Source: Rhodosorus marinus CCMP1338 (lineage: Eukaryota > Plantae > Rhodophyta). Taken from it: a DNA stretch of 64,000 nucleotides. Below the pieces are notes generated by a model that saw nothing but the letters and a program-made list of their open reading frames with translations, did not search any database and was not told where the DNA came from. A program made the translations under genes and the position numbers. The stretch is taken from NCBI GenBank assembly GCA_029953675.1, contig JAMWBK010000005.1, positions 1-64,000 of the forward strand. The letters run 5' to 3'. Below, piece by piece: positions 429-53,393 of this stretch (position 1 is its first letter; every line of letters begins with the position of its first letter).

Positions 429-505
429 CGTACACTTTACTGAAGAACTCCCTATTGGAGCCCATTAAGAAGCAATAAGGATCCTATTGGTCAGCAAAGA
501 AACCC

Positions 506-3500
506 CTAATGGGTTGTGTGGCTACGTTCTAAGATAGGGACGATGTCATAGTCTGCTTCGTCGACACGACGTGCCTGGGTGGCAAGGATAGCGTTTCCTT
601 TCCACAAAGTGCGGTTCAAGATCGCCCGAGCCTCACTTACTTGCGTTGCCCGCTGATCCAGGTGTATAGTCGCTTCCTTGAGGAACTCACTCGCTTGTTG
701 TCCCATCTGCCCAAATGTTTCCAGGCAGAAGGGGACGAAGATGTCGTCGTTATGTTCTCCGATACTGTCACGGTATTTGGACTCTTTAAACTTTTCCGCT
801 TTCCGTGCCGCATACCCGGTCTCCCAAGACGCTTTGTGGAGGTGTGTTCTTTGCAAAGGCGAGGTCACCTTCACATCGATCACGTAGAGCTTGCCTGTTC
901 GTGGGTGTCGGGCTAGAATGTCAGGCCGAAGCCGACTGCCTTGGTAGTGTCCGGTCGGTTCTATTGTCACTTCTAGTCGCCATTGTCTCAGCACTGTCGC
1001 CAGGGCGTCCCTGACCATGTTATGCCGAATTGTCCAACTGCCGGTAGAGCTGGTGCAGTGGTGAAGGCGTTGAATGCCTGCAGCGTCGTGTGGTTGGGAA
1101 CATATCGTACACGTACCAAGTATTCGTACACCCGGCAGGGGTAATCCCAACAGTTGTCGAAGGCTCAGGTTCAGTTCTCCGCTACTTAGGCCGCGTCCGT
1201 GTTTCCTTGGCAAGTCTCGCAGCCAAGTACCCCCTCCTGATCCCTTGCAGGAGCGTATTCGCGCACGTGCCGTCTCGCTGATCTCCGCGTTCTCCACCAT
1301 TTCCTCGAATGCCCGTCGGTGACTCCAGTTGGAGAGGAGTTTTTGGGTTGAACCGATCAAGGGCCTGTCGGGTGGTGTGTGCGGGTTCTCTGCTTGTTCT
1401 TGGCTCTCCAACGATTGCCATTCTGTTAGGCGGAGTATGGGGGCCGGTGTTCCTCGTGCCAGGCAGCGTTTTGAGTGGAGGCTCGCTTCGATTAGTTGTG
1501 CTCCAAGTTGATCCGTCGAGTGGAGCAGGGGTCGAATGTGATGGTGCTCGGTCAGGTTCGTCGATGTGCAGGCATCGAGTAGCGCTCCTAGGTGGCTAGA
1601 TCCAGTCCAATTGAGCTTCAGAGTCTGTCGCCAACTGCTGAAGAAGGCGAGGGGTTGTATTCGTGTTCTCATCGCTAGGCCTGCGCCACCCCATCGGCAA
1701 GGGAGCTGGATCTGCGCTTCGACCACGTCTTTTGCGGGTCCTGTGAGGCCCTGGCCTTCGAGGAGCGAGCCGCACAGTTTGTCGAGTTCCAGGAGCGAGA
1801 TGCGATCGGCTTCGCGTGCGAGATTGGCTCCGTATTGTAGGGCGAGCGTGCGTAGAGCAAAGTCTAGACGCGGTCCTGCGCAGTAGCGGAATAGGCACAG
1901 TTTAATTGGTAGCTCAGTGGTCGGTAGACGGATGACCTCTTGGACGAGTTTTTCATGTTCTCGTTGTAGCTTCCTGTTCGCGTCTTGGACGTAGGTCCGT
2001 GTGCCAATAGGGATGGAATAAAGTTGGATTCCGTCCCGGGTGACATGTACGTCGGGAATTTCCCTGTTGACGAGTCTGGTCGTCGGCAGTTGGAGTCCAA
2101 AAAGCTCGCATTTCGTCCTTTGAAGTTGTGCGCCTATTTCGGGGAGGTGGTGCTCGCTCCAGTGTAGCGCTTCTTTCACGTCCTTCAGAGGGCCAAGTAA
2201 GGTGAGGTCGTCGTGGATTGCGCTAAGGGTGATCCTCGGAAACCGGTCTCGTAGTGCTCGTAGGAGTGGGGAAAGGGCGAGCGCGTGTAAAGCAGGTCCC
2301 AACGGATCGCCTTGTTGGACTCCAGTCCAGGCTCGGAGCTGGAGCCAGTCATCGACATCGCTGTCTCGCCATCCGAATTGGCGTGGGGCGCTCTCGCCTC
2401 GTGGTCCGTAGCTCATTGTCATAAGCGACTTCAATTCGGGGAAAGCTAGCTCGATGATACGGTTTGCGAGGCGTCGGTCGATTCTGTTGAACGCGTTTGC
2501 GAGATCAAGTTTGAGGAGCACGTCATTCGGGCGCGCTGCGAGGTGGGCTTCCGCGAGGTGGATGGCGTGTTCGCAGCCGCCGCTGACCGAGATGCCGAGT
2601 TGTTCCGGGAGCAGAAAGTCGCGAAGGGGCGTGGCGACAGCGCGAAGTGTCCATTGGGTGACGGCCTTCCGCAGTACCTCAGGAATCCCTAGCGGGCGTA
2701 GGCGAAGAGGGTACCCTTGTCTAGCTTCGGCAGACGTTCGCTTGTCTTTCGCGAGGAGTCGGTTGCTGCGCATGGCTTCGAGAAACACGTCAGGAAGCTC
2801 TCCGGAGTGGTGGCAAGCTTGCGAAGGAAGCGTACAAGTACCGGTTGCGTTGTCATGGTGAGACTTCGCAGATGTTCGGCTTTGAGTCCACTCGGCCCGG
2901 GGGCTGTGGCGTACGGTAGGTGTTCCAGCGTTGACAGGAGGCTCTCGTCAGAGGCCAAAGTCGGGTCCCATATATTGCGTTGCAGTCCGTTGAGCTTTGC
3001 CTGTAGGGCGTCTTCAAGCTCCGAGGAGAGCGTTGCGGCCTCGTACTCAGGGAAGAGCGTAGTCAGAACGCGCCAGGTGGCAGGAGTCTTCGAGGCAAGA
3101 TCGGTGGCCAGTAGGAGTTGGCTAGACTGGGACATACGTTGAGCTTTGGCGAGTTGTAGGGCTCGTTTCTGTCGGTGGCGGGTCTGAGGCGGCGGAGGTA
3201 CGATACAGTTGGTGTCAAGGGTTTTGCTGTGAGCAGTAAGGTGTTCCCACACCGTGGAGAACCTTCCGTCCATAACGGCGAGCATCTGCGCAGAAGGGGC
3301 CAGGTCGCCTGTGTAGCCGAGTGCGAGACTGGGGAGAGCGAAGATGAACAGGCGTGACAGGTTCGGCGCTGACGTATCAAGGGCAAGTTCCAGGGCTTTC
3401 GACATGAGATGGTTCCAGCGTGTTTTCAGGTTATCGGGGACGAATTGGCGAGTAGGCGTCGGAGCCTGAGTCAGCTGCCACCAGCGGTTGCCATTATCGG

Positions 3501-3657
3501 TTACGTTGAGAGTGAAGTCGTGCAGAGACGAGAGCCAGGCGTTCGAGTCGGTCTCGAAGAGTGACTGCGTCGAAGTGGGAGGTCGTTGGCGACGAGCACG
3601 AGCACGGCGGGATGAGCGAGAGCGGTTCGGAGTATATTCGTCTGAGGAGCTGCTCAT
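506..3657 (-). CDS. A1 ORF2: reverse transcriptase + CCHC-like knuckle + restriction-like endonuclease; one frameshift at ~2793
   Basis: Track ORFs 2689-3657 and 506-2788 join if one C is added (TTCCTG to TTCCCTG, giving ESFPDVFLEAMRS). RT motifs GPSG, RPLG, DLANAFN, GVQQGDPLGP, AIHDD. RLE motifs CTIC..HHC, RH, E, RPD..D, K..Y, ETFG. Confidence 0.9.
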
Positions 3658-5242: not shown

Positions 5243-5471
5243 AACCCCAGACTAACGTCAACCCCAGACTAACAAACCCTCAAACCCCAGACTAACGTAA
5301 CCCCTGTCGAGTCGGTCTCCAGAAGCGACGGAGTAGACGTGGTAGGTCGTTGGCGGCGAGCACGAGCGCAGCGCGAGGAGCAAGAGGGACCCCAGACTAA
5401 TGTAACCCCGCAGCCTTTATTCGGCTGCTACCTACCGTAGCGCACTAGTAAAACACCAGACTAACGTAACC
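5243..5471 (-). repeat. Interstitial telomere remnants (5243-5304, 5390-5409, 5456-5471) interleaved with an A1-like ORF2 fragment (5305-5389) and an A5 3' tip (5410-5455)
   Basis: CCCCAGACTAACGTAACC copies seen directly; 5305-5389 resembles 3541-3620; 5410-5445 carries the GCTAC-GGTAG-GTAGC hairpin. Confidence 0.85.
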
Positions 5472-8400
5472 GTAAACTTTACTGGGCAGCTGCCTACTGC
5501 AGCGTATCACTAATGCTACTACTGTCTTGGGAAAAGCTTACTCTAACCCCGCTACCGGGGTCTCATTCTACGTTCTAAAGAAAAAAAAACATGGACCAGT
5601 GGATTCGCCAACTGGTCCACTCGCAGAGCGCCTATCGCGATCTCCGCGTTCCCCTGCCATGATTTGCGGTTGATCTAAGCCCGTACATCGCTCAGTTCTA
5701 GGCTCCGGTGCAACAAATGCTTGCAGCTATCTCGTAGAAATTCTTGGGCCATTTCTCCTGTACGCCCAAAGCTCTCATTCGCGATGGGAATGAGCTTGTC
5801 GTATGGCTTCTTTACTGACATAGCCTCTTTTTAATGCGCCATTTTCCACCTCTCCGCTCTTTTCGCTGCATATCCGCTCTCTGACCCACTCCGATTCACG
5901 TATTTCTCCTGCAGTGGCGATGTAACCGTCACATCCAGCGCATACCTTTGGAACGTCCTGGGATGAGTGGCAATGATATCCAGTCTTAGTCGGTAGTTCT
6001 CGAAGTACCACTCCAGTTCTTGCTTAATGTCGATGAAATTCCAGCGATTCAGCCATCGCGCCAGCTCCGTACAGATTTCGTGGTGCCTTCGCTGCCATAG
6101 TCCCGTCGATGTTGGGTAGTGGTGAAACCTTTGTACGCCGTTAGTACTACCGGTACTACCCCAACTAGTACACGTCCTCAACGTCCGTATTCTCGGTACG
6201 GGCAAGCCCAACAGCTGTCGTACATTCACTTGCAGTTCTGCTGTACTCATTTTTTTCAGCGCGAGCGTCGGCATTTCCCGTAACCACACTCCTGATCCAG
6301 CTCCGGCTGCGGACCCAATTCTGGCCCGATCTTCAGCCGAAATTTGCCTGTGGGATACCAGTCTTTGGAAAGCTGCATGGTGTGCCTCTCTGGAGAGGGT
6401 TTGTTGAATGGAGCCATGTCTCCATGCTGGGGGATCGGCTTCTTCTGCTCCTGGGGCGGGTTCGGTTCTCTGCTTCAGGGTGGCCAAGTTCTTGATTCGC
6501 TCTGGGGCCTCTGGGCACAGTCTGCGTTGTGTTGCTGCTGCAGACTCGCATATATTAGCTGTGCTGTTGACCTTTGAATTCTCCTCAGTGCTTGTGTTGC
6601 TGCACGCACTTCCGAAGATGCTTGTTTTTGGACCTCGGTGAGATACGGCCATTCCCCGTTATTAGCTTTGAAGGTCTCGCACCAGGCCGAGCAGAAGGTG
6701 ACGGGCTGGATCCGTTGTCTCGTAGCGAAGCCCAGTCCCCCCCAGCGACAGGGGAGTGCTATCTGGTCTAGTGTAGGGTCTTCGTAGTCAGGGTCCTCGA
6801 TGGCCGTAGTAGTGAGGCCTCCGAATAGTGTATCTAGGTGATAACGCGTCAGGACGTCCGCTTACCGTGCAAGTGTTCTTCCAAAGGGGTAGGCGAGGCA
6901 GCGTAGAAAGTAGTCCAGGCGGGGTTTAGCACAATACCGGAAGAGGGCCAGTTTCGTAGTCAGTTCTTCAGGGGGCAGGTGCACAATCTCCTTAAATAGT
7001 TTCTCGTGGTTGTTTTGTAGCCGCCGGCACTCGCTTTGGATGTAAGCGCGTGTTCCAATCCGATGGAATGGATTGTAACTCCTTCTCGCGTCGCCGTGAC
7101 GCCAGGGATGTCGCGGCCAAGCAGTCGTGGCGTGGTCATCGTGGTGCCGTACAAGGTGCACTTGGCAAGCTGCAGTCGCGCTCCGAGTGAGGGAAGCAGT
7201 GTCTGTCCCCAGTGTAGTACGTCTTTCAGTAGTTGTAGCGGCCCTACGATGGTGATATCGTCGTGGATTGCCACAATAGTTAAATTAGGTGCTTTGTTGT
7301 GCAATGCTTCCAAGAAAGGTGCCAGGGAGAGCGCATGTAGGATCGGTCCTAGCGGATCTCCGTGTTGAACTTCCGTTGTGGCCCGAAGTGTCAAGCGATG
7401 GGTGTCGTCTTGGTCTGCACCGTGGTTATCACGCCATCCGAAGAGTGTAGGAGCTTTCGTGCTGTCATTTCCGTAGCCAAGCCGGTACACGGCTTCCAGC
7501 TCGGGGAAATGGTGGTCCAGGATTTGCTTTGCGATGCGGCGGTCGATGCGGTTGAACGCATTCTCCAGGTCGAGCCGTAAGACGACGGCGTCAGGTTCGC
7601 ACGAGAGGTGGGCCTGGATCGCGTGTAGTGATCGTTCACATCCACCGCTAACTCCGATGCCCAGTTGTAGAGGTTTGAGCAGTTCCCTAACGCGGTCGGT
7701 AACCGATCGAAGGATCCACTGTGTGGCCACCTTTCGGAGGACTTCGGGTACTCCGATCGGCCGGATGCCAGGCCTCGCTGCAACGGGTTTGTTGCTCGTG
7801 GCTTTTTCGAAGGGCAATAGTCCGCTGCTACGCATTGCCCGGGTCATCTGGGGTACAAACTTCTCTGGTGCCGTAGCGAGTTGCCGGAGAACGCGGATTA
7901 GAGCCACTTGGACGTCCTGGGTGGCTCCCTGTAGGTGTTCTGCTCGGAGTCCACTAGGCCCGGGGCTGGTACCTTGGGGAAGCCGGGCTATTATCGCGAG
8001 AATATCTTCATCTGCTGCTTGTCGCGCATTCCATCTTCTCCCGAGATTATCGGTGTCCTTGGAGAGCAGGTTTTGTAGGGCTTGGTCGACATCCTCCGGT
8101 AGGGAACACTCCGTCGGGTCCGGAAAGAGTTCCTCCGATTGTTGCCACGTAGCGTTGGTAAATGGAGCCAGTTCGGTGGCCTGCAGTCTTCGGGCCGCGT
8201 GAGAGAGGCGTCCGAGATGTGCCAATTTCAGGGCCTGTTTTCGGCGCCTTTGCGCCTGTTTCTGGGCTATTTCAGGTCCGCTTAGGGCAGTACGAGGGGT
8301 CTGGTTGGAGGCATACTCCTCGAGCGCAGTCCAGACTGTGTAAAACTCGCCTCCGAGTACGTGCGTGACCTGCGTGCCGATTTGAAGAGTAGTATACCCG

Positions 8401-8550
8401 AGAACCAATCCTGGGAGCCCGGAGAGGAAGAGGCTGGCATTCACTGGTGCGGTGCGGTCCACTGTGAGCTCCAGGGCGACCCGAAGGAGTCTGCTCCAGT
8501 CGTTAACGTGTGCGCGAGGCACGAAACGTCGAGTAGGGACGGGGCAGTGT
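5472..8550 (-). mobile_element. 5'-truncated, frameshifted family A2 element (ORF2 RT-RLE + 3' UTR)
   Basis: Track ORFs 6960-8522, 6862-7161 and 5831-6652 encode successive ORF2 parts closely matching 43624-46841. The 3' end abuts a telomere remnant. Confidence 0.9.
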
Positions 8551-8872
8551 GCGAGACGAGTCCAAACCGTATATACGTGTACTCCCAGGCACCTAAGAAA
8601 GTACTCGGCGGAAGTGGGGTTAACCCCAGACTATCCCGACACAATCGACGCCGGTATCGGAGACAACACCGTAAAGGTGGGAATGTAAAAACACGAGTCC
8701 GTCCGATTGGTACATGACTGACCGCACGATCCGTGAAGATTGGCCTGACTGACGATCGCGTGAATGACAATCATTGGAGTGAGACTGTCTAGTGTTATGA
8801 ATGTGTTTTGTTACGCGGGTGGTTAGCGCCTAAAGCTTTCCGGAAGGGTATAGTCTGGGGAGTAAAGTTTAC

Positions 8873-10115
8873 ACTGGACTTTACTGGACTTTACTGGACT
8901 TTACTGGACTTTACTAGCATAGCCTGAAGCGCTACGCAAAGGCGTGAAGATGAACTAATAACTAGGGAGGGAAGCATGCAACCCCAGGCGCCGATGGCGC
9001 GCCTCGGAAAGCATGTCGCTGGAATATCGCCAAAGGGAGACACTTAAACGCCTCAAGAGCGCCAAATATTCAGTAGGATGTTCAGCAAAACATTTCCGCA
9101 ACCACTCTAAACCCGACTTATCCACGTGACCAAAGCTTTCCACAATGAATGGCTGGAACCGGTGAGAGCGACCCTCAGCGCAAGGCAGACTGGCCATGCT
9201 CTCAGCATACCGTCGTTCCTTAACTCTTCGAAGGGCTGAAGCCGCGGCCCCCCGGCGGCGGGCGGCTGCGGTGAGGTGGGCGCTGGCCACGGGGCAGGTA
9301 ATCGCAAGGTCCACATATGTTGAGCGTCTGGCAGCAGCGTCGGAGACGAGGAGATCGGCTATACAACGGGGCGGTGCAGAGTCCGAGATTGATCTGGGCA
9401 GTTCCGACTCAACCTCAACCGTATGCCCTATCCGAGTCAAAAATTCGCTGAGGATGTACTTGAGGCGAGTGTGACGCCTCGTACGGAGACCTCTCAACAG
9501 TCCGCAGGAACCCAGGAAGTGGTAGCCACAAGCGTCAATCCGGCTCTCACATCCCTGACAGAAAGACGGCCGATTAGAGTGCCACGGAGCCTGTGGCAAA
9601 CCGAGATAGATCCGTGCGGCAGAACGGAACTGGAAAGCATCGAGACGATGACTCAATGACGACGGTAGAGTGGTTAACCACAAGTGCGAGAGGTGGCCTC
9701 CCATGCCGCGGAGACGAGCGGCAGCGGTAGGCGGCGTGAGAGGAGAATTGAGCATGATTGTGTGAGCGGCACTGTGTTGGCCCCAGGTGAGGCTATGTTG
9801 AATCACATCAGTGCGGGAGCTCCACAATCGGCTCAAACCCGGGTAGTCTGCAACAGGTGACCCGGGGCTAGCCTCTCCGTCATCGGCAAGAACTCGGTCG
9901 AGGGGAGAATCCTCAATCGCTTTAGCTCGTCCCCATGACAGCTCCCTCCAGGAACGAAAGCGGGACCGATTTGCGTCCGGCACGGCGTTGCACCTCCTGA
10001 ACGCGTGCTGAAGACCATCATAAATTGTCAAAAGCGGGGGCGGCAGGGTCACTGGATCCTCGTTGGTCAAAGCTCGAGCCAAGAAGCAGGCACTTCGCAT
10101 CTGGAAGGTCACCAA
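8873..10115 (-). mobile_element. 5'-truncated family B RLE retroelement (ORF 8955-10115) with (AGTAAAGTCC)4 tail
   Basis: CQGC..HFLGSC, RH, E, ADLLVSD..YVD, K..Y, ESFG motifs; 10-nt tail repeats at 8873-8912. Confidence 0.88.
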
Positions 10116-10126
10116 CGTTCGCAGCG

Positions 10127-36605: not shown

Positions 36606-36629
36606 TCTAATTCCACCTCTACATGTCAC

Positions 36630-38038: not shown

Positions 38039-38140
38039 AGGTGAGGCTCTGTTGAATCACATCAGTTCGTGAGCTCCACAATCGGCTCAGACCCGGGAAA
38101 TCTGTAGCCGGTGACCCGGGGCTAGCTTCTGCCTCGTCTG

Positions 38141-40355: not shown

Positions 40356-40439
40356 ACGTTAGTCGGTGTCAGTCTGGGGGAAAAGTTAAGTTTACGGTTA
40401 CGTTAGAGTCTGTGGTTTCAAGTCTTGAGAAGATAGTTT

Positions 40440-41777: not shown

Positions 41778-41990
41778 TAGTCTGGGGTTATTAGTGTTGC
41801 GCTGCATTAGGCAGTTGCCGAGTAAAGTTTACAGTTACGTTAGTCCAGTGTTTCAGTAGTGCGCTACGGTAGGTAGCAGCCGAATAAAGGCTACGGGGTT
41901 AGACGTAGTGTTGCGCTGCAGTAGGCAGCTGCCCAGTAAAGCTTACGGTTACGTTAGTCTGGGGTAAAGTGGTTTACGGTTTCGCTAGTC
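41778..41990 (+). repeat. Stack of three group A 3' tips (A4, A5, A3/A2 types) separated by telomere remnants
   Basis: Hairpins GCTGC-ATTAG-GCAGT, GCTAC-GGTAG-GTAGC and GCTGC-AGTAG-GCAGC, each followed by ARTAAA and (G)GTTA. Confidence 0.85.
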
Positions 41991-42037
41991 TGGGAACAAG
42001 CACAATTATACGGTGATATTTTATTAAAGAAAGCTTT

Positions 42038-43624
42038 ATGATCGAGAAGGAGACGCTGGGAAAGTACCCAGCACATCTCCGCCACCCGGGCACCAACGGC
42101 CCTGGCCCAGGCGAAGAGGGGGTGGGGACACCGAACGGGAGTCGGAGGCCAGAACCGAGCGGCAGGACAACAAGCACCCAGGATTTCGAAGCAGTGAACA
42201 CACAGGAGGCTTACAGGATGGAGACTCAAGAGGCAACAGGACCTGCGGCAGTCTTTTTGCACCAACTTCGCGCCTTCGACAGGTGCTATCAGGACTTGGG
42301 AATTGGCGAAGCAGTTATCGCGGACTTCTACAAGGCTGTATTCAAATTCTACTCACGGATTAACAGCACCATTGAACTCGAAGGAATTACCGCACGTCTC
42401 TCCGAGCTTTCAGCAAAACCTTATATGTGGCACGGTGGAGCCGCAGCACCGAACCCTTCCCAAATCCTGCAACAGCACCCGCCGACGGCGGCCATCAATC
42501 AACATGCAGCCGGAACGCGTCTCAATCAACTTCCGCTCAGGACAGGTGTCACGGTCCCAGTGGACTACGCAGAGGCCTTCCCAGTCATCGGGAATGGGAG
42601 TGCACAACCTACCTACGCTGAGCGCACGGCTCAGACAGCCTCAGTGCGCGGAGAAGCAGCACCAACCCGCACAGTAGGACGCCCAGGGCCGCAGACCCAG
42701 CAAGCAGCCCTGAGACAGCTGCACACTACGGTGGAGGGAGCAACCTGGGGACCAGAGACCAAACCGATCCTTGCCACCCTTCGAAACGTCCGCCCCCCAA
42801 GGCAGGATGATGTGGCACCTTCGGACTTCACCACCGTACTCTGCTGCGCGCTGGGAATCCCAGCTTCTCACATCGCGCATGTGGACTTCATCTCATCACA
42901 CGCAAGTTTGCTCTGCCATCCGGATGCAATCCCGATTGTACAAAGCGCTATCGCTCGAGGCGTTTTCAGAACAGGGATCTTTGGATCGTTCACACTGAGA
43001 CATCCTGACCGGCAAGTGACCCTCCACACAGGACAGGGACTGGAGGCTGACAACCTGTTGGGCTACAACGAAAGGCAAAGGATCACCCCAGCGGATATCC
43101 CAGCCCAGACGCTGCAACGAGCCATACAACAGATCATCAGGATTCGCGCGAGGCTCGGAAAGAGACACCTGTCGTTCTCTACTCTTGCAGCCATCCATGA
43201 GACGCTAGAAGAGCGTCTACGAGCGTTACAAGGCCTACAACATCCACCAGCGGTCGCCGGGGAGAGTGTGGAACCCCTTGAGACTGCAGCAGCTACACAC
43301 GCAGCCCCAGAAGCCTCGGCTCCTGACGGAGCCGCACAGGCAGCCCGCGGGACCGTTGACGCTTCGGGTGACTCCAGCGCCACGTCTCAACTACCACAGG
43401 TGGATGCCGAAGAGGAAAATCCACACGCCGAGCTCCCGCACAACCTTCCGGACCCCCCCCAACAGAAGCGCACACGCGTGACAGCGGCAGGCACATGCCA
43501 TGACACCGAGATGACTCTCGCAGCCCCAGAAGCATCTCAGCGTGATAACGATGCCCAGACGCCCTCCGAAGCCCACGATAATGCGATGGACATCCAGACA
43601 AGTCAGGAAGACAACCCCCAATAA
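42038..43624 (+). CDS. A2 ORF1 (528 aa)
   Basis: ATG to TAA open frame; core homologous to the ORF1s at 30-31 kb and 41 kb; KRTR basic motif near the C-terminus. Confidence 0.85.
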   Translation: MIEKETLGKYPAHLRHPGTNGPGPGEEGVGTPNGSRRPEPSGRTTSTQDFEAVNTQEAYRMETQEATGPAAVFLHQLRAFDRCYQDLGIGEAVIADFYKAVFKFYSRINSTIELEGITARLSELSAKPYMWHGGAAAPNPSQILQQHPPTAAINQHAAGTRLNQLPLRTGVTVPVDYAEAFPVIGNGSAQPTYAERTAQTASVRGEAAPTRTVGRPGPQTQQAALRQLHTTVEGATWGPETKPILATLRNVRPPRQDDVAPSDFTTVLCCALGIPASHIAHVDFISSHASLLCHPDAIPIVQSAIARGVFRTGIFGSFTLRHPDRQVTLHTGQGLEADNLLGYNERQRITPADIPAQTLQRAIQQIIRIRARLGKRHLSFSTLAAIHETLEERLRALQGLQHPPAVAGESVEPLETAAATHAAPEASAPDGAAQAARGTVDASGDSSATSQLPQVDAEEENPHAELPHNLPDPPQQKRTRVTAAGTCHDTEMTLAAPEASQRDNDAQTPSEAHDNAMDIQTSQEDNPQ

Positions 43625-46600
43625 TGCCGAGCCGACGTAGGGGAATCAAACGCAGACGGGAAGAGCCTCTTTTCTTCTCCAAGCGACAGGACTGGATTGA
43701 ACGCTGGAATGTCTTCGTCAACGATATCACGGACAGAGGTAGGTTGTGGACTCGTCTCGCACACTGTCCCGCCCCTACTCGACGTTTCGTGCCTCGCGCA
43801 CTCGTCAACGCCTGGAGCAGCCTCCTTCGGGTCGCCCTCGAGCTCACAATGGACCTCAGCGCACCAGTGAATGCCAGCCTCTTCCTCTCCGGGCTCCCAG
43901 GATTGGTCCTCGGGTATACTGCTCTTCATATCGGCACGCAGGTCACGCACGTACTCGAAGGCGAGTTTCACACAGTTTGGACTGCTCTCGAGGAATATGC
44001 CTCCAACCAGACACCTCGCACGGCACTAAGCGGACCTGAGATAGCTCAGAAACAGGCGCAAAGGCGCCGAAAACAGGCCCTGAAATTGGCACATCTCGGA
44101 CGCCTTTCACACGCGGCCCGACGATTACAGGCCACCGAACTGGCTCCATTTACCAACGCTACATGGCACCAATTGGAGGAACTCTTTCCGGACCCGACGG
44201 AGTGTTCCCTACCGGAGGAGGTCGACCAAGCCCTACAACTCCTGCTCTCCAAGGACACCGATAATCTCAGGAGAAGATGGAATGCTCGACAAGCAGCAGA
44301 TGAAGGTATTCTCGCGATAATAGCGCGGCTTCCCCAAGGTACCAGCCCCGGACCTAGTGGACTCCGAGCAGAACACCTGCAGGGGGCCACTCAGGACGTC
44401 CAAGTGGCTCTAATCCGCGTTCTCCGGCAACTAGCTACGGCACCAGAGAAGTTTGCACCCCCGATGACCTGGGCAATGCGCAGCAGCAGATTACTGCCGT
44501 TCGAAAAACCTACGAGCAACACAACCGCTGCAACGAGACCTGGCATCCGGCCGATTGGAGTCCCCGAAGTCCTCCGAAAGGTGGCGACACAGTGGATCCT
44601 TCGATCGGTTACCGACCGCGTCACCGAACTGCTCACACCTCTACAACTAGGCATCGGAGTTAGAGGTGGATGTGAACGATCACTACACGCGATCCAGGCC
44701 CATCTCTCGTGTGAACCTGACGCCGTCGTCTTACGGCTCGACCTGGAGAATGCGTTCAACCGCATCGGCCGCCGCATTGCAAAGCAAATCCTGGACCACC
44801 ATTTCCCCGAGCTTGAAGCGGTGTACCGGCTTGGCTACGGAAATGACAGCACGGATGCTCCTACACTCTTCGGATGGCGAGACAAACAAGGTCCAGACCA
44901 AGACGACACCCATCGCTTGACGCTTCGGGCCACAACGGGAGTTCAACAGGGAGATCCCCTAGGGCCAATCCTACATGCGCTCTCCCTGGCGCCTTTCTTG
45001 GAAGCATTGCACAACAAAGCCCCTAATTTAACCATTGTGGCGATACACGACGATATCACCATCGTAGGGCCGCTACAACTACTGAAAGATTCACTACACT
45101 GGGGCCAGGCACTACTTCCCTCACTCGGAGCCCGACTGCAGCTTGCCAAGTGCACCTTGTACGGCAACACGATGACCACGCCACGACTGCTCAGCCATGA
45201 CATCCCTGGCGTCACGGCAACGCGAGACGGAGTTACCATCCATTCCATTCCGATTGGAACACGCGCTTACATCCAAAGCGAGTGCCGGAAGATACAAAAC
45301 AACCACGAGAAACTATTCAAGGAGATAATTCACCTGCCCCCTGAGGAACTGAATACGAAAATGGCACTCTTCCGGTATTGTTCTGAACCCCGCCTAGACT
45401 ACTTTCTACGCAGCCTCGCCTACCCCTTTGGAAGAACACTGGACTTTACTGGACTTTACTAGCATAGCCTGAAGCGCTACGCAAGGCGTGAAGATGAACT
45501 AATAACTAGGGAGGGAAGAAGAACACTTGCACGGGAAGCGGACGCCCTGACGCGTTATCACCTCGATACGCTATTTGGAGGCCTCACTACTACGGACACC
45601 GAGGACCCTGACTACGAAAACTCTACACAAGCCCAGATCGCACTCCCCTGTCGATGGGGAGGCCTGGGACTCGCTACGAGACAACGGATCCAGCCCATCG
45701 CCTTCTACTCGGCCTGGTACGAAAGTTTCAAAGGTAATTCCGGGCAATGGCCATACCTCACCGAGGTACAAGCGCAATCTTCGTCAGAGGCACCTGCAGA
45801 CGACCACACACTGAGGAGAATCCAAAGGTCGACAGCACAGCTTGCTGACCAAATCCGCGAGTCTGCAGCAGCAACACAACGCAGACTGCGCCCAGAGGCC
45901 CCAGAGCGAATCAGGAGCCTGGCCACCCTGAAGCAGAGGACCGAAACCGCGCCAGGAGCAGAACAAGCCGACCCCCCAGCATGGAAACATGGTTCCATTC
46001 AACAAACCCTCTCCAGAGAGGCACACCATGCAGCTTTCCAAAGACTGCTATCCCACGGGCAAATTTCGGCTGAAGATCGGGCCAGAATTAGGTCCGCAGC
46101 TGGAGCCGGATCAGGAGTGTGGTTACGGGAAATGCCGACGCTCGCGCCGAAAAAACTGAGTACAGCAGAACTGCAAGTGAACGTACGACAGCTGTTGGGC
46201 TTGTCGATACGGGGAATACGGACATTGGGGATTGTGGTAGTAGTCATAGTACTAACGGCGTACAAAGGTTTCACCACTGCCCAACATCGACGGGACTATG
46301 GCAGCGAAGGCATGACGAAATCTGTACAGAGCTGGCGCGATGGCTGAATCGCTGGAATTTCATCGACATTAAGCAAGAACCGGAGGGGTACTTCGAGAAC
46401 TACCGACTAAGACCAGATATCATTGCCACTCATCCCAGGACGTTCCAAAGGTACGCGCCGGATGTGACGGTTACATCGCCACTGCAGGAGAAATACGTGA
46501 ACCGGAGTGAGTCAGAGAACGGGTATGCGGCAAACAGAACGGAGAGGTGGAAACTTGCGCATTACAAAGAAGCTATGTCCGTAGAGAAGCCAGAAGACAT

Positions 46601-46841
46601 GTTCATTCCGATTGTGATCTAGAGCTTTGGGCGTACAGGGCAAATGACCCAAGAATTTCTACGAGATAGCTGCAAGCATTTGTTGCACCGGAGCCTAGAA
46701 CTGAGCGATATTCGGGCTCAAATCAACAGGAAATTATGGCAGGGGAACGCGGAGATCGCGATAGCCGCTCTGCGAGTGGACCAGTTGGCGAATCCACTGG
46801 TCCCAGTTTTTTCTTTCGAACGTAGCATGAGACCCCGGTAG
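43624..46841 (+). pseudogene. A2 ORF2 (RT-RLE), disrupted
   Basis: 612-aa frame with RT motifs up to the insertion at 45441; remainder in frames 45530-46200, 46119-46622 and 46644-46841. Confidence 0.88.
45441..45517 (-). mobile_element. Family B 3' tip inserted in A2 ORF2 with a 10-bp TSD (GAAGAACACT)
   Basis: TSD at 45431-45440 and 45518-45527; removing the insert restores YPFGRTLAREAD. Confidence 0.9.
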
Positions 46842-46883
46842 CGGGGTTAGCGTAAGCTTTTCCCTAGATAGTAGTAGCACTAC

Positions 46884-47070
46884 GAACGAATGGTTTAATC
46901 GGAGGCTGAAAAAACCCGAGGGGAAAAAAAGACTAAGCGCGGCGAAGTACTCGCGCCTCCAACATCAAAGCGGCATTCATGCGCCACAGCAGGAAACTTA
47001 AACGGGTAAACAACGATTGAAGACGGTCAGGGCGTTCGCGGAACAACTCCCGAAGCCAGCGAGAACCAAC
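46884..47070 (-). mobile_element. Family C 3' fragment
   Basis: Matches 10620-10810. Confidence 0.85.
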
Positions 47071-48385
47071 TAGTGATACGCTGCAGTAGGCAGCTGCCCA
47101 GTAAAGTTTACGGTTACGTTAGTCTGAGGTAATTAGACGACGTTTGCCAGCGACGACCAGTGCACGGATCCAGAGGCTGGCCGATAGGCAACCGCTGGAG
47201 GACTTGGCCGAAGGCACAGCGGAAGACACAGCAGGTACTCAAAGGTTTGACGGTCCGATCCAAAAAACGCTCTCTCGAGAGTGTCACCGACAAGCCTTTG
47301 AGGAGCTTACTGGAGATTCAACACTGCACGACCTAGACCGGGCGAGGATCCGATCGGCATCTGGAACGGGGTGCGGGGTCTGGCTACGTGACTGTCCTAG
47401 TACAGGGCCGCGGCAGTTGACGCGAAATGAGATGTTGTGGAGCATGCGGATGCTTCTAGGGCTACCACTACAAGGACTAGGGCGGTCACACACGTGCACA
47501 GTCTGCGGAGCAACCACACGATGTGCGTGGGATCCAGCGGCTGCACCACTGCAGGACCTCATCAGGGATGCGAACCAAGAGGCACGACGAGCTAAAGGTG
47601 GAACTGAGTCGATGGTTACACCTATGGAGTTTCACGGAGATACAAGTAGAGCCTGAGGGGTTCTTTGCTGGGTCTGGAATTCGCCCAGACATCGTTGCAC
47701 GACACCCGACGAGCGGATGCGTGTACGTGGTGGATGTGATGGTGACGTCGCCACTTCAAAGACATCAGTTGAGACATACGAGCTGGAACTGCGGGTATGC
47801 TGCGAAACAGGCCGAACAAGCGAAGGCGTTGCATTATAAGGAAGTGCTGAGGGGGCAAAACCGAGATGTGGTTCTTGTGCCGTTCATTTTTGAGACATTT
47901 GGTCGAATGGGCCAGGCAAGCCTTGAATTTCTTCGAACGGCGAGCGCGCACCTGCATGATCGTGAGTCCCATCTATCGTCGGTGAGGGGTCAACTAAACC
48001 GCATTCTGTGGCAGCACAATGCTGCGCTAGTTGAGCACGCGATCGAGAAAGATCGCGCAGATAGACCGATATTTCCCCTAAGTAGAATTTAGATGAGACT
48101 CCTGGACAGGGAGTCCAGGTTTGGTTAGTGCGTACGTAGTGATCGTGTGATGCGCTACATTAGGTAGCTGCCCAATAAAGGCTACGGGGTTAGACCCCGG
48201 TAGCGGGGTTCCAGTAAGTTTCTCCCTAGATAGGATTAGACGTAGTGTTGCGCTGCAGTAGGCAGCTGCCCAGTAAAGCTTACGGTTACGTTAGTCTGGG
48301 GTTAAACACACATTTTCCCTAGATCTTGATAGAATTAGTGTTGCGCTGCATTAGGCAGTTGCCGAGTAAAGTTTACAGTTACCCT
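47071..48385 (+). mobile_element. A2 tip + telomere remnant, A5 3' part (47135-48190), then stacked A3 and A4 3' UTRs with a telomere remnant (48285-48305)
   Basis: Frames 47144 and 47523 (RPDIV, ETFG, FPLSRI); successive hairpin/ARTAAA/GGTTA units. Confidence 0.85.
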
Positions 48386-51005
48386 GGAATCTTTGCTCGC
48401 TCTGAATACCGAAACACTTAAGCGGCGGTGGGATTCAAGAAAAGCGGCCGACGAGGGCCTCATGTAGATCGTGGCACGTCTTCCTCAGGGCAAGAGCCCA
48501 GGTCCTGGCGGTCTCCGAGCGGAACACCTCCAAGGTGCAACTCAACAGACGCAAGTGGCGTTGATTCGTGTATTGCGACAACTGGCGACCGCTCCTGAGA
48601 AATTTTCCCCGGCTCTGATCCGCGCCCTTCGCAGCAGTCGACTCCTGCCGTTCTCGAAGCCTAACAAGGGTTCAGTGCCGCAGGAACATCCCGGAGTTCG
48701 CCCTATCGGAGTATCAGAAGTTTTGCGCAAGGTAGCAACGCAATGGACTCTTCACGCGGTTATGAACAGGGTGCGTGAGCTGCTGGTGCCCTTACAACTG
48801 GGTATTGGAGTAAGTGGCGGGTGCGAACGCTCACTTCACGCGATCCAGGCCCATTTGTCATGCGAACCCGATTCGGTGATCCTTCGGCTAGACCTGGAGA
48901 ATGCCTTTAATCGCATCGACCGACGCCTTGCCAAGCAACTGGTGGACGAGCACTTGCCGGAGCCTGCACCAGTGTATAGGCTTGGCTATGGAAGCGACAA
49001 CGCGGACTCACCGACGCTCTGTGGCTGGCGATCTTCCCCTGGACAGAACGAAACCGACACCTCTCGCCTGACTCTCCAAGCAGCTACAGGAGTCCAACAG
49101 GGAGATCCACTGGGGCCGGTGCTACATGCACTATCCCTGGCGCCCTTTCTAAGAGCGTTGCGAGCCAAGTTCTCCAACGAAACGATTGTTGCTATCCACG
49201 ACGATATCACGATTGTCGGGTCGCTACAAGCCTTGAAGGCATCCCTGGCATGGGCAAAAACTGTGCTCCCCTCTCTTGGAGCACGCCTGCAACTCGGCAA
49301 GTGCACTGTGTACGGGCGAACACTGACTACCACGCGAGTGGCCAACCATGAGATTCCTGGAGTCCAAGTGACCAGAGACGGAGTCACTATCCACTCGATA
49401 CCGATAGGCAGCCGAGAACATATCGAACAGGAGTGCCGGGGGTTGCAAAATAAGCATGAGAAACTCTTTGAGGAAATTGCCAAGCTCCCACAAACGGAGC
49501 TTACGACGCAAATTGCCCTCTTCAGGTTCTGTGCGGAAACGCGGCTAGACTATGTTCTACGATGCCTCGCATACGAGTTTGGAAGAACTCTGGCACGCGA
49601 GGCGGATGTGATGACCAGATATCATCTGGAAATTCTATTCGGAGGGCTCGCTACGACAGCTGTAGAGGACGACGAGTACGCAGAGCTGATCTCGGACCAA
49701 ATCGCTCTGCCCTGCCGCTGGGGAGGGTTGGGTTTCGCTAATCGAAAGCGCGTCCAACCCATCGCGTTTTACTCGTCATGGAGAAACACCTTCCGGAACA
49801 ATGAAGATGAATGGCCATACCTGACTGAACTAGAGCGGGAAGTTTCGGCAGCACGCTCACCGGACACATACGAGCCGATGGAGCAACGATGGTCGACTGC
49901 ACAGCTGGCGGACCAGATATGTGCATCGTCGCGAGCAATACAACGGACGCTCGGACCAGAAACCCCGCCGCGGATCTTGGCACTGACTACCCTGCAACAA
50001 CCGCGAGAAACATCTCTTCGAAGCGCACCGGGCGAGACTGCAGCTTGGAATAATGGTTCAATACAACAAACCCACTCTCGAGAGGCACACCATTGTGCAT
50101 TCCAAAGGTTGGTCACCAACCCACGAATCTCCCCTGAAAACCGAGCTCGAATACGGTCCGCCGCGGGATCCGGGTCGGGAGTCTGGCTGCGTGAAATACC
50201 AACGCTGACACCGAAAAAAATGAGTGCGGTTGAGATGCAGGTAAACGTTCGACAACTGCTGGGGCTGCCAATTCCGGGATTTCGGACCACCGAGAAGTGC
50301 ACTAGTTGCCGGAGTAAACACGGAAGGACTGTGGTACAACGGTTTCATCACTGCCCAACATCAACTGGACTGTGGCAACGTAGACACGACGAAATCTGCA
50401 GAGAGCTGGCACGGTGGCTAAGGCGATGGAACTTCTTGGACGTGGAGCAAGAACCTGAGGGGTACTTCTAGAACTACGGACTGCGACCTGATATCATTGC
50501 TAGGCATCCGAGGATCAAAAAAAGGTATGCGCTGGATGTGACCGTGGTGTCACCATTACAGGGAAAATATTTGCGGCGGAGCCAAGATAATAGCGGATAC
50601 GCGGCGAGAGCTGCGGAGAAGTGGAAAATCGCTCACTTCAAGGGAAGCGATGATGATCGAGAACCGGATGACAAGTTGTCCCGACAGCGATAGAGACGTT
50701 TGTGCGTGCAGGCCGAATGCTTCAAGGAGTCCCTCCGCGACGGCACCGAACACTCACTACACAGGAGTGGCGAGGCTGAAGAGAACGTGAGATCGCCAGA
50801 TAAACCGGCAACTATGGCGAGGTAACGCAGAGATAACCCAGTAGGCGCTTTGCGCGTGGACCAGTTGGAGAGATCCGCTGGTGCGTGTTTTTTCATCTTT
50901 TGAACGTAGCATGAGACCCCGGTAGCGGGGTTCCAGTAAGTTTCTCCTAAGATAGGATTAGACGTAGTGTTGCGCTTTGCAGTAGGCAGCGGCCGGTAAA
51001 GCTTA
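48385..51005 (+). mobile_element. 5'-truncated A3 ORF2 + 3' UTR, ending at a telomere remnant (51006-51025)
   Basis: 666-aa frame 48471-50471 nearly identical to 31700-33720; indel-rich after 50470. Confidence 0.9.
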
Positions 51006-51025
51006 CGGTTACGTTAGTCTGGGGT

Positions 51026-52780
51026 CGGGAGTCTGGCTGCGAGAACTGCCGACTTTGGAGCCGAAAAAGCTGAGCTCGACGGAAATGCAGGTTAATATCC
51101 GACAACTACCGGGGCTACCGATTCCGGGGCTGCGGACCCAACAGGAGAAGTATGTACTCGATGCCGTGGTAAACACAGTGCAAATGTTTTTCATCCCATT
51201 GCCCCACGTCGAACTGGAGAAAACTGTGGCAACGTAGGCATGAAAGAGATATGCACGGAGATCGCAAGGTGGCTGAACAGGTGGAACTTTCTAGACATCG
51301 AACAGGAGCCAAGAGAAGTACTTTGAAAACTACGGTCTCACATTGGCCATTGACATCATTAAGCTACGCATCCGAGGACGATTGTGCAACGGTACATGCT
51401 AACATGGACCCACAGTGACGGTTGTCTGTCTCCTCTGCAAGGGAAGTATCTGAGGCGTAGTGAGGGGAGGAGAATGGATACACGCAGCCAAGATGTGCAG
51501 AGAGCTGGAAGAAAGCGCACTACAAGGGAGTCGATGACGATAGAGGAAACACCCGGATGACAAGTTCATCCCCAATTGCGGTAGAAAGCTGCGCGTTTGG
51601 GCCGGACGGGAAAGATGGCACAGGAGTTTCTGCGGGACAGCTGCAAACACCTATTGCACACAGGAGTGAGGAGCTGAGCGATGTAAGATCGCAGATCAAC
51701 CGGCAACACTTTGGCGAGAGGTAATGCAGTGAGATAGCTCCTAGGGGCTTATGCGCGTGGGAACCAGTTGGAGAATCCACTGGTCCACTGTTTTTCTTTT
51801 TTAGAACGTAACGCATGAAGACCCTGGTAGCGCGCGGGGTTAGAATAAGATTCCTTGCCCTGGACAGTAGGTAGAAGGGTGGTGCGATACGCTGCAGTAG
51901 GCAGCCTGCCCAGTAAAGGTTACGGCTACGTAAGTCTGGTACTTACTGGGGATCCTACACTGGAAAGATATTGACCGGGCGCGTATCCGGATCGGCAGCC
52001 GTAACAGGATGCTGGGGGTTTATGGCTGCGAGATTTTCCTGGCCTACAGGGCCGAGGGCAGTTAAGAATGTCTTCCAGAGGTGTCGAGATGATCTGCGAG
52101 CATGCGGATGCGCTGTTCCCGGAGCTCTACCTCTACCAGGGGCCTAGAGTCGGACACATACACGCACACGGTTTGTGAACAAGCTTGCACGATCGCAGAG
52201 AGAATTCAACACGTCTGCATCACCGCTAAGAACAGTATCGTCTTTGGAACGCCGCACATGCGAACAAAGCGACATGATGGACTAAAAATGGAGCTGAGCC
52301 GATGGATGCACCTGTGGAATTTTACGGACCTACGAGTGGAGCCGCAAGGGTTCTTTCCCGGGTCAGGTATTCGACCAGATATTGTAGCAAGGCACCCGAC
52401 GAGCGGGCATGTGTACGTGAGTGGACGTAATGGTGACGTCGCCGCTTCAACGTCATCAACTGAGACAAACGAGCTGGAAAAGAAACGGATATTCAGCGGA
52501 GAAAGGGGAGCAAAGCAAAGTCGCACACTACCAGGCGACTGCTCATCTTCATGATCGGGAAACACACCTCTCTCATCGGTAAGAGGTCAGTTGAACCGCG
52601 TTTTATGGCAGCAAAATGCGCAGCTAGTCGAACATGCGATCGAGAAGGACCGGGTAGACCGGAGAATATTTCCTTTAGCTAGATTTAGATGAGACCCCTG
52701 GACAGGGTGTAAGTTTAGAGCGTACATAGTGTTTTAGTAGTGCGCTACGTAGATAGCAGCCGAATAAAGGCTACGGGGTA
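51026..52780 (+). mobile_element. Heavily indel-damaged A3-like (51026-51930) and A5 (51940-52780) 3' fragments
   Basis: Recognisable RLE and 3' UTR pieces with many single-base indels; possibly a low-quality consensus. Confidence 0.7.
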
Positions 52781-53094
52781 AGGTTGGAAAACAATTTTGG
52801 ACGGCTTTGTTTGTGGAAAACAACGGTAAAAAGTTTATAAGCAGTTACAAGTATGATTGTGAGGAAGGTACGCGAGCCGTACCCCGAGCCTCTTGTGATC
52901 CCGGGCCCACACACCTCGGGTACGTGGGAAATGGAGAAGGAGAAAGAGCTGCTGCAACAGCAGCGGCATCAACAGAGATGATTGATTTTTAGGTTAACTT
53001 TGATTGAATATCGGACGATTTACCGGACGAATTGAGCGGAGAGCGCAATCGGACCTGTTTTTGGGAATATTTTCAATCAGATATCCTGTAAATG

Positions 53095-53393
53095 TAACCG
53101 TAAGCTTTACTGGGCAGCTGCCTACTGCAGCGCAACACTACGTCTAATCCTATCTAGGGAGAAACTTACTGGAACCCCGCTACCGGGGTCTCATGCTACA
53201 TTCAAAAGAAAAAACAGGCACCAGCGGATTCTCCAACTGGTCCACTCGCAAAGCGCCTAGTGCGATCTCTGCGTTACCTCGCCATAGTTGCCGGTTTATC
53301 TGGGATCTCACGTCTCTCAGCTCCTCACTCCTGTGCAGCAGGTGTTTGCAGCTGTCGCGGAGGATTTCTTGTGCCATTTGCCCCGTACGCCAC
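53095..53393 (-). mobile_element. A3 3' fragment in opposite orientation
   Basis: Reverse complement of the A3 3' end; GTAACCGTAAGCTTTACTGGGCAGC junction. Confidence 0.85.

Follow-up and report, generated by a model that had tools for sequence, protein, structure and literature searches.

Candidate telomere-targeted retrotransposons of several families in a subtelomere of the red alga Rhodosorus marinus

A 16-nt telomere repeat occupies the left end of a 64-kb stretch of the Rhodosorus marinus CCMP1338 genome (contig JAMWBK010000005.1, positions 1 to 64,000; hereafter the window, to which all copy, junction and family counts refer), and copies of several diverged families of retrotransposons lacking long terminal repeats (non-LTR retrotransposons), here called A elements, are joined by their 3' ends to units of this repeat. 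We consider it probable, at about 80%, that the A elements are autonomous retrotransposons with two open reading frames (ORFs) and a restriction-like endonuclease (RLE), of the R2/CRE type, which are specialised for the 16-nt repeat by the mechanism proposed below. An initial annotation of this DNA had described such elements as building the subtelomere, and A-family sequence does make up about 31 kb of 53 kb (about 31.1 kb, or 59% of positions 428-53393).

The telomere repeat and its junctions with A elements

The terminal tandem array at 3-427 (period 16, 26.6 copies, 100% identical) reaches the first bases of the window. Its G-strand unit is GGGGTTACGTTAGTCT, and the plus strand of 3-427 reads AACGTAACCCCAGACT; the G/T-rich strand is the minus strand, running 5' to 3' toward the end of the window and contig, which is the polarity of a left telomere. 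The sequence GTTACGTTAGTCTGGG, with at most one mismatch, was found 37 times in the window, against 0 expected from 100 shuffles. Twenty-six of these copies are terminal and 11 internal, and the internal ones are single units, those at 5.2-5.5 kb being on the minus strand and those from 28 to 51 kb on the plus strand; another dozen partial units came from a k-mer scan. To our knowledge, a 16-nt telomere repeat is unusual outside budding yeasts, and an exact-sequence literature search with six rotations of the 16-mer found no paper.

Each internal telomere unit sits at the 3' end of a retrotransposon copy or fragment. We re-read the element boundaries and found that the nine junctions of the initial annotation were correct within 0-2 nt, and about ten further junctions were identified. 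Approximately 18 of the 21 3' ends are followed by telomeric sequence, and the other three are not. The 3' ends are listed below, with the last element base before the slash and the first repeat base after it.

428/427, minus strand: A1
5471/5470, minus strand: A2a
29856/29857, 34213/34214, 41947/41948, 48284/48285 and 51007/51008: plus-strand array
40352/40353: unit cut to 12 nt
47112/47113: unit with 1 mismatch
5407, minus strand: A4 fragment
29845, 41898, 48190 and 52779: A4 ends ...GGCTACGGGG, followed by T
40396, 41833 and 41978: further junctions
48377: only GTTAC after the element end
51924: degenerate unit
15612 and 53100, both minus strand: non-telomeric flank, in each case GTTAC and then unique DNA
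61874: non-telomeric flank of a diverged relative

The typical 3' end reads ...GCGCTGCAGTAGGCAGCTGCCCAGTAAAG(C/T)TTACG/GTTACGTTAGTCTGGGG in A2 and A3, ...GAGTAAAGTTTACA/GTTAC... in A5, ...CAGTAAAGTGTACGC/GGTTACG... in A1 and ...GAATAAAGGCTACGGGG/T... in A4. A4 joins the repeat 2-3 nt further upstream than the other families (...CTAC GGGGTTAC), a shifted boundary that it may have inherited from its founder. The sense strand of the element was that of the telomeric G-strand in every case, as had been proposed, and is the minus strand on the left arm and the plus strand in the array at 27.6-53 kb.

Inventory of the A elements

The copies and fragments on the left (minus-strand) arm are as follows.

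3-427, minus: terminal telomere array of 26.6 perfect 16-nt units, G-strand GGGGTTACGTTAGTCT toward the contig end
428-5242, minus: A1, full-length, about 4.8 kb, 3' end abutting the telomere; reverse transcriptase (RT), CCHC and RLE all present; the most complete copy
5243-5304, minus: telomere units 5' of A1, one perfect and two variant; telomeric sequence is thus on both sides of A1
5305-5388, minus: internal fragment of an A1-like ORF2, 84 nt, codons about 15-40, truncated at both ends; the 3' break joins GGGGTTACG directly
5407-5455, minus: A4 3'-terminal fragment, 49 nt, then unit GTTACATTAGTCTGGGGT (5389-5406)
5471-8620, minus: A2a, 5'-truncated; 15-nt partial unit at its 3' end (5456-5470) and partial unit TAGTCTGGGGTTA (8621-8633) at its 5' junction
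15345-15608, minus: downstream copy of a 264-bp direct repeat flanking A5a, 99% identical to the upstream copy (18272-18537)
15612-18271, minus: A5a, 5'-truncated, a non-telomeric insertion; ends ...GTAAAGTTTACA, then GTTAC; 264-bp target-site duplication (TSD)

The plus-strand array (27.6-53 kb) contains the following.

27629-28035, plus: A6, fragment of a sixth family, ORF2 N-terminal codons about 37-290; 3'-truncated, ends ...CGCCTGGG and is joined to the unit at 28036-28055
28056-28385, plus: A2 fragment, RT codons about 5-116, without its own 3' end, fused directly to A4a (chimera)
28386-29845, plus: A4a, 3' half of the element, thumb to RLE; ends ...AATAAAGGCTACGGGGT, followed by an 11-nt A3-type 3' end (29846-29856) and a unit (29857-29875)
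29876-34213, plus: A3a, 4.3 kb; its 5' start TTTTGGACGGCTTTG recurs at 52795; two units follow (34214-34247)
34248-35040, plus: A3-like fragment truncated at both ends, 76% identical to A3 positions 1761-2532
39783-40352, plus: A5b, 3' part of the element, with 96.6% identity to A5a; downstream come GTTACGTTAGTC, a degenerate unit, a 3' fragment of 16 nt (40381-40396) and GTTACGTTAG
40407-41774, plus: A5-like element, 5' part, with an ORF1 homologue (40818-41741); ends in a fold-back
41791-41995, plus: run of tiny 3'-terminal fragments and partial units, namely A5 43 nt, 12-nt unit, A4 53 nt and T, A3 48 nt, 18-nt unit, 13 nt, 17-nt variant unit
41996-47112, plus: A2b, full-length; unit 47113-47130 follows
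47071-47112, plus: representative 3'-terminal module, with a 5-bp stem and NNTAG loop (GCTGC-AGTAG-GCAGC), then CC-(A/G)-(A/G/T)-TAAAG-N-TTACG; present in all A families
47131-48190, plus: A4b, 3' third of the element, 81% nucleotide identity to A4a; ends ...GGCTACGGGGT
48192-48382, plus: A3 3' fragment of 93 nt, 20-nt unit, A5 3' fragment of 73 nt and GTTAC
48383-51007, plus: A3b, 5'-truncated, RT-RLE ORF at 48471-50471; unit 51008-51025 follows
51026-51924, plus: Ax, the 3' part of another lineage like A2/A3, at a nucleotide identity of about 70%; degenerate unit GCTACGTAAGTCTGG... follows
51956-52779, plus: A4c, degraded 3' part with an internal deletion in RLE; ends ...GGCTACGGGGT
52795-52884, plus: the A3 5' terminus a second time, with 89% identity to positions 2-90 of A3a
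53100-53393, minus: inverted A3-type 3' fragment, 83% identical; ends ...AAAGCTTACG, then GTTAC and non-telomeric DNA
29846-29875, 40353-40406, 41775-41995 and 48191-48382: strings of tiny fragments, as also at 5389-5470 on the left arm

The A2/A4a chimera could have arisen by template switching or by recombination. The fold-back consists of 41222-41378, which is inverted at 41619-41777 with 98% identity and terminates the A5-like ORF1 region; this inverted repeat (41222-41777) points to a rearrangement inside the array. The 3' untranslated region (UTR) of A2b holds a 187-nt fragment of a second retrotransposon group, group B, on the opposite strand (46884-47070).

The initial estimate of at least five group A variants was borne out at the protein level for A1-A5, to which the Ax and A6 fragments are added. 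The mutual protein identity of A1-A5 is 39-72%: A1 is 45-46% identical to A2 and A3, A2 and A3 share 72%, and A4 and A5, which are distinct from each other and from the remaining families, are 43-48% identical to A1 in the RLE region. Junctions and protein identities together bear out the claim of several diverged families with one target and one orientation. The ratio of nonsynonymous to synonymous substitution (dN/dS) was 0.11 for A2 versus A3 ORF2, 0.17 for their ORF1 and 0.12 for A4a versus A4b; for the close copies A2a/b (88-92% nucleotide identity) and A3a/b (pN 0.021, pS 0.053) it was 0.38, and for A5a versus A5b it was 1.0. The between-family values of 0.11-0.17 indicate long coexistence under selection, and the whole set fits divergence of the lineages during their active phase, with decay of the individual copies once inserted.

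The A elements encode a reverse transcriptase followed by a restriction-like endonuclease

An ORF scan of the window detected RVT_1 (Pfam) in seven ORFs. ORF1 of A1 extends from an ATG at 5174 to 3654, and its ORF2 lies in two frames (2689-3657 and 506-2788), with one frameshift near 2790 followed by a 760-aa RT-containing frame. A2b has an intact ORF1 (42038-43624, 528 aa) and an ORF2 that starts at 43624 and is interrupted after 45462; in A3a, ORF1 (29879-30994) is followed by a broken ORF2 (30994-32295 and 32697-34190). The ORF1 stop and the ORF2 start overlap as ATGA in A1 and as TAATG in A2b and A3a, an arrangement that may reflect translational coupling and that we count in favour of two-ORF, autonomous elements.

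C-terminal to RT, all A families keep the motifs CTxC-x(12)-HHC, RH, RPD(I/L)-x(13-14)-(I/L)DV(K/T)V and GYAA..AE..K. A profile built from the A proteins and their database relatives matched R2 proteins in PDB at E=1e-40 and L1 ORF2p at 4e-19, and a separate profile match to the R2 CCHC/RLE domain had an i-Evalue of 8.6e-10; a single-sequence PDB search gave marginal R2 matches only (E=0.005). Pfam detected no apurinic/apyrimidinic (AP) endonuclease, and neither an LTR nor a poly(A) was found in the A elements. The RVT_1 matches, the C-terminal CCHC/RH/RPD motifs and the R2 profile match, which includes RLE, uphold the earlier description of these copies as RLE retrotransposons, and the A elements have a non-LTR RT, CCHC and PD-(D/E)xK motifs after RT, a constant 3' end, variable 5' truncation and a TSD, as RLE non-LTR elements do.

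The N-terminus of ORF2 was modelled by AlphaFold as all-helical (mean pLDDT 73, and 85-94 over residues 20-130), and a Foldseek search of this model against PDB returned nothing at E<1. The frameshift of A1 (~2790) falls in the ORF2 segment ...ESF/PDVFLEAMRSNRLL, and it coincides with the place in ORF2 where the A6 fragment stops and the A2 fragment starts at 28 kb (28035/28056, one telomere unit apart).

A conserved stem-loop module at the 3' end

We aligned 17 3' ends, comprising all families, the diverged copy ending at 61874 and a related transcript. In this alignment the stem has 5 bp, the loop of 5 nt contains TAG without exception, and TAAAG is conserved (cf. TAAAGNTTACG). RNAalifold predicted the same stem independently, and pairing was found in 95% of cells, compared with 6-52% when the 3' partner was slid. 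At the fourth pair of the stem, most families have G:C, but A4 has A:U and A1 has C:G. By analogy with the 3' UTRs of R2 and SART1, this module is likely a recognition element for RT.

Orientation, off-target copies and a proposed mechanism

On the plus strand of the left arm, C-strand repeats are followed by A1 in antisense, 3' end first. The first cDNA strand thus runs on from the distal C-rich strand, which indicates that the primer was a 3'-OH in the C-strand. Since natural chromosome ends expose a 3' overhang of the G-strand, the orientation of the A elements needs an endonuclease nick and cannot be obtained by simple end-priming.

The non-telomeric copies bear on the RNA template. The undisturbed target of A5a reads ...ATGCG GTACTGG..., and the 3' junction reads ...GTAAAGTTTACA GTTAC TGG..., A5a retaining GTTACTGG where the target reads GTACTGG. 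The extra GT(T) did not come from the target, which argues that the RNA ran past ...TTTACA into GUUAC; synthesis of A5a would have begun where the TAC of the target paired with the RNA tail. The fragment at 53100-53393 (minus strand) has ...CTTACG GTTAC and then unrelated DNA. From these two junction sequences, A RNA seems to carry a telomeric tail of at least GTTAC. If the 3' boundary is inherited from the template, it does not mark the nick, and reading the nick position off the boundary was dropped because the off-target junction shows GTTAC to be RNA-derived. The single cut site GGG^GTTACG suggested earlier is compatible with the junctions; it cannot be inferred from them, the off-target GTTAC coming from RNA, and is unproven.

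We propose that an A element is transcribed through its 3' end into the adjacent unit, which would give an RNA with a short telomeric tail (at least GUUAC). The ORF2 protein would bind the 3' stem-loop module and nick the C-rich strand of a telomere unit, and the 3'-OH of the C-strand would pair with the RNA tail and prime target-primed reverse transcription (TPRT), producing the same element/GTTACG boundary wherever the nick falls. The 5' end would be joined after top-strand cleavage a few nucleotides off. Abortive synthesis or template jumping, if frequent, would leave strings of tiny 3' fragments and chimeras, and repeated insertion, breakage of interstitial tracts and telomerase healing would generate head-to-tail arrays with spacers of at most one unit.

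A tentative extension, which we think possible but would not favour, is that the RNA ends in a part-unit, so that each insertion recreates a cleavable unit behind the copy; the enzyme may then prefer the unit beside a 3' module, and the arrays would be self-propagating. If the elements did carry their own target in this way, their arrays would be a buffer zone built by retrotransposons and cycling with telomerase healing, and they would be the first RLE lineage to prime from a nick in the telomeric C-strand, co-evolved with a 16-nt red-algal repeat.

Growth of the arrays and alternative explanations

At the 5' junctions, the upstream flank ends in GGGGT (six cases), GGGGTT, GGGGTTA (four), GTTACGTTAGTC (two), ...TCTGG or GTTAC. 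Seventeen of the 19 internal spacers do not exceed 20 nt; the two others measure 34 nt (two units, 34214-34247) and, 5' of A1, 62 nt. 5' truncation is rampant, with copies from 11 nt to full length, and tiny 3' fragments of 11, 13, 16, 43, 48, 49, 53, 73 and 93 nt each have a partial unit. Two 3'-truncated fragments join a unit directly (...GACA/GGGGTTACG at 5305 and ...GCCTGGG/GTTACG at 28035); both look like healed breaks, and the fragment at 5305-5388 fits a break followed by telomerase healing.

Three explanations of array growth are non-exclusive, and the data do not choose among them. Insertion might prefer the first unit behind an existing element; a new element lies directly behind an A5 end at 48377/48378, which indicates that the upstream GGG is dispensable. 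Alternatively, one TPRT event might concatenate cDNAs by jumping between tailed RNAs, which would also account for the direct A2/A4 fusion at 28385/28386. Finally, longer interstitial tracts might get lost, by analogy with the MoTeR arrays of M. oryzae, where tracts of at least three repeats break and heal and those of at most two are stable.

It is unlikely that the arrays arose mainly by recombination, break-induced replication, segmental duplication and healing of a few ancestral insertions. Such a history would be in keeping with the 88-99%-identical segments common to both arms, the duplicated A4/A3 junction, the fold-back at 41222-41777 and the two 3'-truncated fragments joined to telomere units, and MoTeR arrays are known for such behaviour. 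However, adjacent junctions join different families at different truncation points, the junction is common to families that differ by up to 55-60% in protein, and strings of 11-93-nt 3' fragments are typical of abortive TPRT rather than recombination. Quite unlikely, in our judgement, is that the telomere unit is a tail carried by the RNA, like the (ATTC)n of group B, and not the target, in which case the elements would not be telomere-specific, with copies accumulating near the end as insertions are tolerated there. Spacers are almost always of one unit or less, GTTAC is kept at both non-telomeric insertions, and a related transcript reads through its 3' end, all of which such a tail would accommodate; yet A1 abuts the terminal array of 26 units and there are units on its 5' side also, the upstream flanks of 5'-truncated copies stop inside a unit (GGGGT, GGGGTT, GGGGTTA), so that the target side is telomeric, the off-target copies carry 5 nt and no whole unit, and approximately 18 of 21 3' ends are telomeric, with a single orientation within each array.

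Endonuclease-free addition to the chromosome end, as by HeT-A/TART or the Penelope-like Athena and Coprina, could be suggested by head-to-tail terminal arrays in which one element is last before the telomere repeats. The orientation is wrong for it, as the elements point their 3' ends at the terminus and their cDNA continues the C-strand rather than the G-overhang, and HeT-A-like end addition was rejected on this ground; RLE is moreover conserved in all families under purifying selection, and telomerase-type repeats lie distal to A1, making this explanation extremely improbable. We give the same very low credence to an assembly artefact of a repetitive subtelomere, such as a chimeric join of two chromosome ends: an array with right-telomere polarity does occur at 27.6-53 kb, 27 kb from the left telomere, but the junction pattern is independent of large-scale order, the copies are diverged and not collapsed, and the TSD and unit-level junctions are internally consistent.

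Telomere-targeted TPRT by A elements, the reading that we prefer, has several observations against it. No copy in the window has a fully open ORF2, even A1 having one frameshift, and no DNA-binding domain was found: regular-expression and Pfam searches of the ORF1/ORF2 N-terminus of A1, A2b and A3a gave no Pfam domain, zinc finger or CCHC knuckle, and no zinc finger or Myb was seen N-terminal to RT. The stem of the 3' module has no more than 5 bp and one covarying pair, and the folding energy of the whole 3' UTR was no better than that of shuffles (z -1.3 to +1.1, not significant). Metagenome contigs scanned for the junction TTACRGTTACGTTAGTC gave 42 matches, of which 0 run into TGGGG or follow TAAAG; all 42 are chance matches. 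The region 29595-29965 resembles 52537-52883, and since junctions are shared by these copies, part of the array grew by duplication and not by insertion. The plus-strand array (27.6-53 kb) has right-telomere polarity inside a left arm, opposite to the terminal telomere, and segments of it recur in the left array at 88-99% identity and in inverted order. It must have been internalised by rearrangement; any one of three events, a past inversion, an end fusion or an assembly join, could account for it.

Relatives and clade placement

Nearest in the databases were NDN08_004844 of Rhodosorus marinus, an MMETSP transcript and, at 49%, a JGI metatranscriptome protein. Identity to A3 amounts to 80% for the MMETSP protein and 74% for NDN08_004844. 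Together with the R. marinus relative of an ankyrin ORF and the group-B sequence shared with the metatranscriptome contig, these matches point to a host that is Rhodosorus or closely related to it, a stylonematophycean red alga. RT-domain references for all RLE clades were taken from the supplement of PMC10088271, in a set without CRE1/2, SLACS, CZAR and Cnl1. Only MoTeR1, CRE-3_CCri and CRE-2_NV matched the A families strongly (E 6e-11 to 9e-20), whereas the best R2 value was ~1e-5, and R4, Hero and NeSL did not get beyond 8e-5, most of their matches being non-significant. In a neighbour-joining (NJ) tree, A1-A5 and the Rhodosorus and metatranscriptome proteins formed a clade with 100% support, to which group B was sister (91%), and A and B sat among the CRE references, with bootstrap values below 40 at the deep nodes. 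The earlier "CRE-like" designation therefore agrees with the best RT matches (MoTeR1, CRE-3_CCri and CRE-2_NV) and with the topology of the tree, but not with firm support at its deep nodes; judged from the RT domain, it is the best available label, with membership unproven. Members of the CRE clade have an N-terminal C2H2 zinc finger in the RT protein, and this was not found in A1, A2b or A3a.

The description of the elements as undescribed holds, in that a literature search covering red algae, Rhodosorus, telomeres and non-LTR elements turned up no paper on such elements. The R. marinus genome paper treats telomeres only as assembly marks and gives no account of the repeat or the elements.

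The metatranscriptome relative (L001, JGI metatranscriptome 3300016967, 4187 nt) is a transcript of a related element with 49% protein identity to A1. It runs 68 nt beyond its 3' motif (AAAGCTCACA end), and its first 113 nt are 91% identical to group-B sequence of the window; its source is the same organism or a sister to it, and it is evidence of read-through transcription.

Comparison with known telomere-associated systems

Telomere-specific retrotransposons are known from insects, where they are of the AP-endonuclease type, and from a few fungi and Giardia, where they are of the RLE type. A1 has telomere units on both sides and the array copies are all in G-strand sense, as expected of the telomere-specific class, to which the A elements probably belong. 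Like MoTeR1, FoTeR and Cnl1, they have RT followed by a C-terminal RLE and insert in one orientation into telomere repeats. They resemble MoTeR in their head-to-tail arrays, very short interstitial tracts, variant units 5' of a full-length copy, copies truncated at the 5' end and the capping of truncated elements by new telomere, and MoTeR1 was the best or second-best reference RT match (E 2e-15 to 9e-20), at an identity of only ~28-31%. In MoTeR it is the 5' end that lies nearest the chromosome terminus, and the sequence after FoTeR 3' ends is TAACCC (C-strand); A elements, by contrast, point their 3' end at the terminus, with the G-strand next to it. Of the analogues cited in the initial annotation, MoTeR thus has the opposite orientation, as does FoTeR. 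The A system further differs from the fungal ones in its red-algal host, its 16-nt unit in place of TTAGGG, its two ORFs with a stop/start overlap and the presence together of at least five deeply diverged families.

Coexisting telomere-specific lineages, subtelomeric arrays and a fixed orientation are shared with SART1 and TRAS1 of Bombyx mori. SART1 has a UAAUG overlap of ORF1 and ORF2, and the TAATG of A2b and A3a is the same motif. SART and TRAS are R1-clade elements that have an N-terminal AP endonuclease and poly(A), unlike the A elements with their C-terminal RLE; the RT of BM_SART1 matched the A families at E 0.059 or worse, and features of the R1 clade were absent from them. The accuracy of SART1 initiation depends on the 3' tail of its RNA.

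The RT-CCHC-RLE order, the precise 3' and variable 5' junctions and the extreme 5' truncation are like those of R2, the 28S rDNA-specific element that serves as mechanistic model, from which the A elements differ by the lack of an N-terminal zinc finger/Myb, by two ORFs and by their target. R2 RNA is co-transcribed with the flanking target, the downstream target sequence sets precise initiation, and its RT jumps between templates. CRE-3_CCri (Chondrus crispus, a Repbase CRE) and CRE-2_NV, with RT matches of E 6e-11 to 9e-16 and 25-29% identity, fall in the same region of the NJ tree as the A elements, and the bootstrap of the common node is below 40. GilM and GilT of Giardia are likewise of the RLE type and form tandem head-to-tail arrays beside telomeres, but their RT matched the A families at E 0.008 or worse and did not group with them in the tree.

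We regard the A elements as a new lineage of a known element type, in which the red-algal host, the orientation, the 16-nt target and the evidence for an RNA tail are new. RLE-type telomere retrotransposons would thereby extend to red algae, with several lineages sharing one niche for a long time under purifying selection, as SART and TRAS do in the silkworm. G-strand priming by MoTeR and FoTeR could in principle use the natural 3' overhang, whereas A elements could prime only via a C-strand nick, which would make them a cleaner system for studying how an RLE recognises a telomere repeat. The off-target A5a, with its TSD and GTTAC, gives a direct prediction on RNA tails and the start of reverse transcription, and an RLE/RT specific for 16 nt could be of interest for site-specific insertion, as R2 is.

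Other features of the window

Group B is a second group of RLE retrotransposons, with 25-32% protein identity to A and a 3' tail of (ATTC)n/(GTTC). It was considered as a further telomere family and rejected: RLE is present, but the tail is (ATTC)n and the flanks are unrelated. A flanking duplication of ~50 bp (36555-36607 and 38039-38089) surrounds copy B1. The copies are as follows.

10611-12996, minus: group B
36635-38040, plus: group B, copy B1
8902-10115, 35681-36833, 46884-47070, 27152-27331, 23209-23385 and 55394-56697: group B

A U2 snRNA gene (61893-62089, plus strand, Rfam 128.8 bits) begins shortly after the diverged A-like element (61640-61874, plus strand), which ends 18 nt upstream of it. 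The element has the same stem-loop (GCTGC-CCTAG-GCAGC), ends ...AAGTTCACG and has a non-telomeric flank; it may be a sister lineage with a different target (cf. the U2-targeting Utopia), or its position may be due to chance. An unclassified repeat occurs three times (14111-15263, 38041-39447 and 62354-63638; 68-79% identical), one copy just downstream of the U2 gene, and showed no similarity to the A or B libraries.

Adjoining the fragment at 53100-53393 is an ORF (53193-54095, plus strand) with an integrase zinc-binding domain (PF17921, E=2.5e-19). It is probably part of a Ty3/gypsy-type LTR retrotransposon, extending to ~61 kb, that bounds the plus-strand array; the large ORFs at 57285-61292 had no Pfam match. 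On the minus strand, 19695-22019 holds an ankyrin-repeat ORF of 774 aa that is made of tandem repeats of 132 nt (7.4 copies, 79% identical); its only database relative is an R. marinus protein (68% identical over 15% of the ORF). A tRNA gene (23047-23118, plus strand, Rfam 59.5 bits) adjoins a group-B 3' fragment. Short (ACTGGACTTT)n tandem repeats are present at 8873-8915 and 57063-57104, and a 25-nt match to them also lies inside the A2 coding region.

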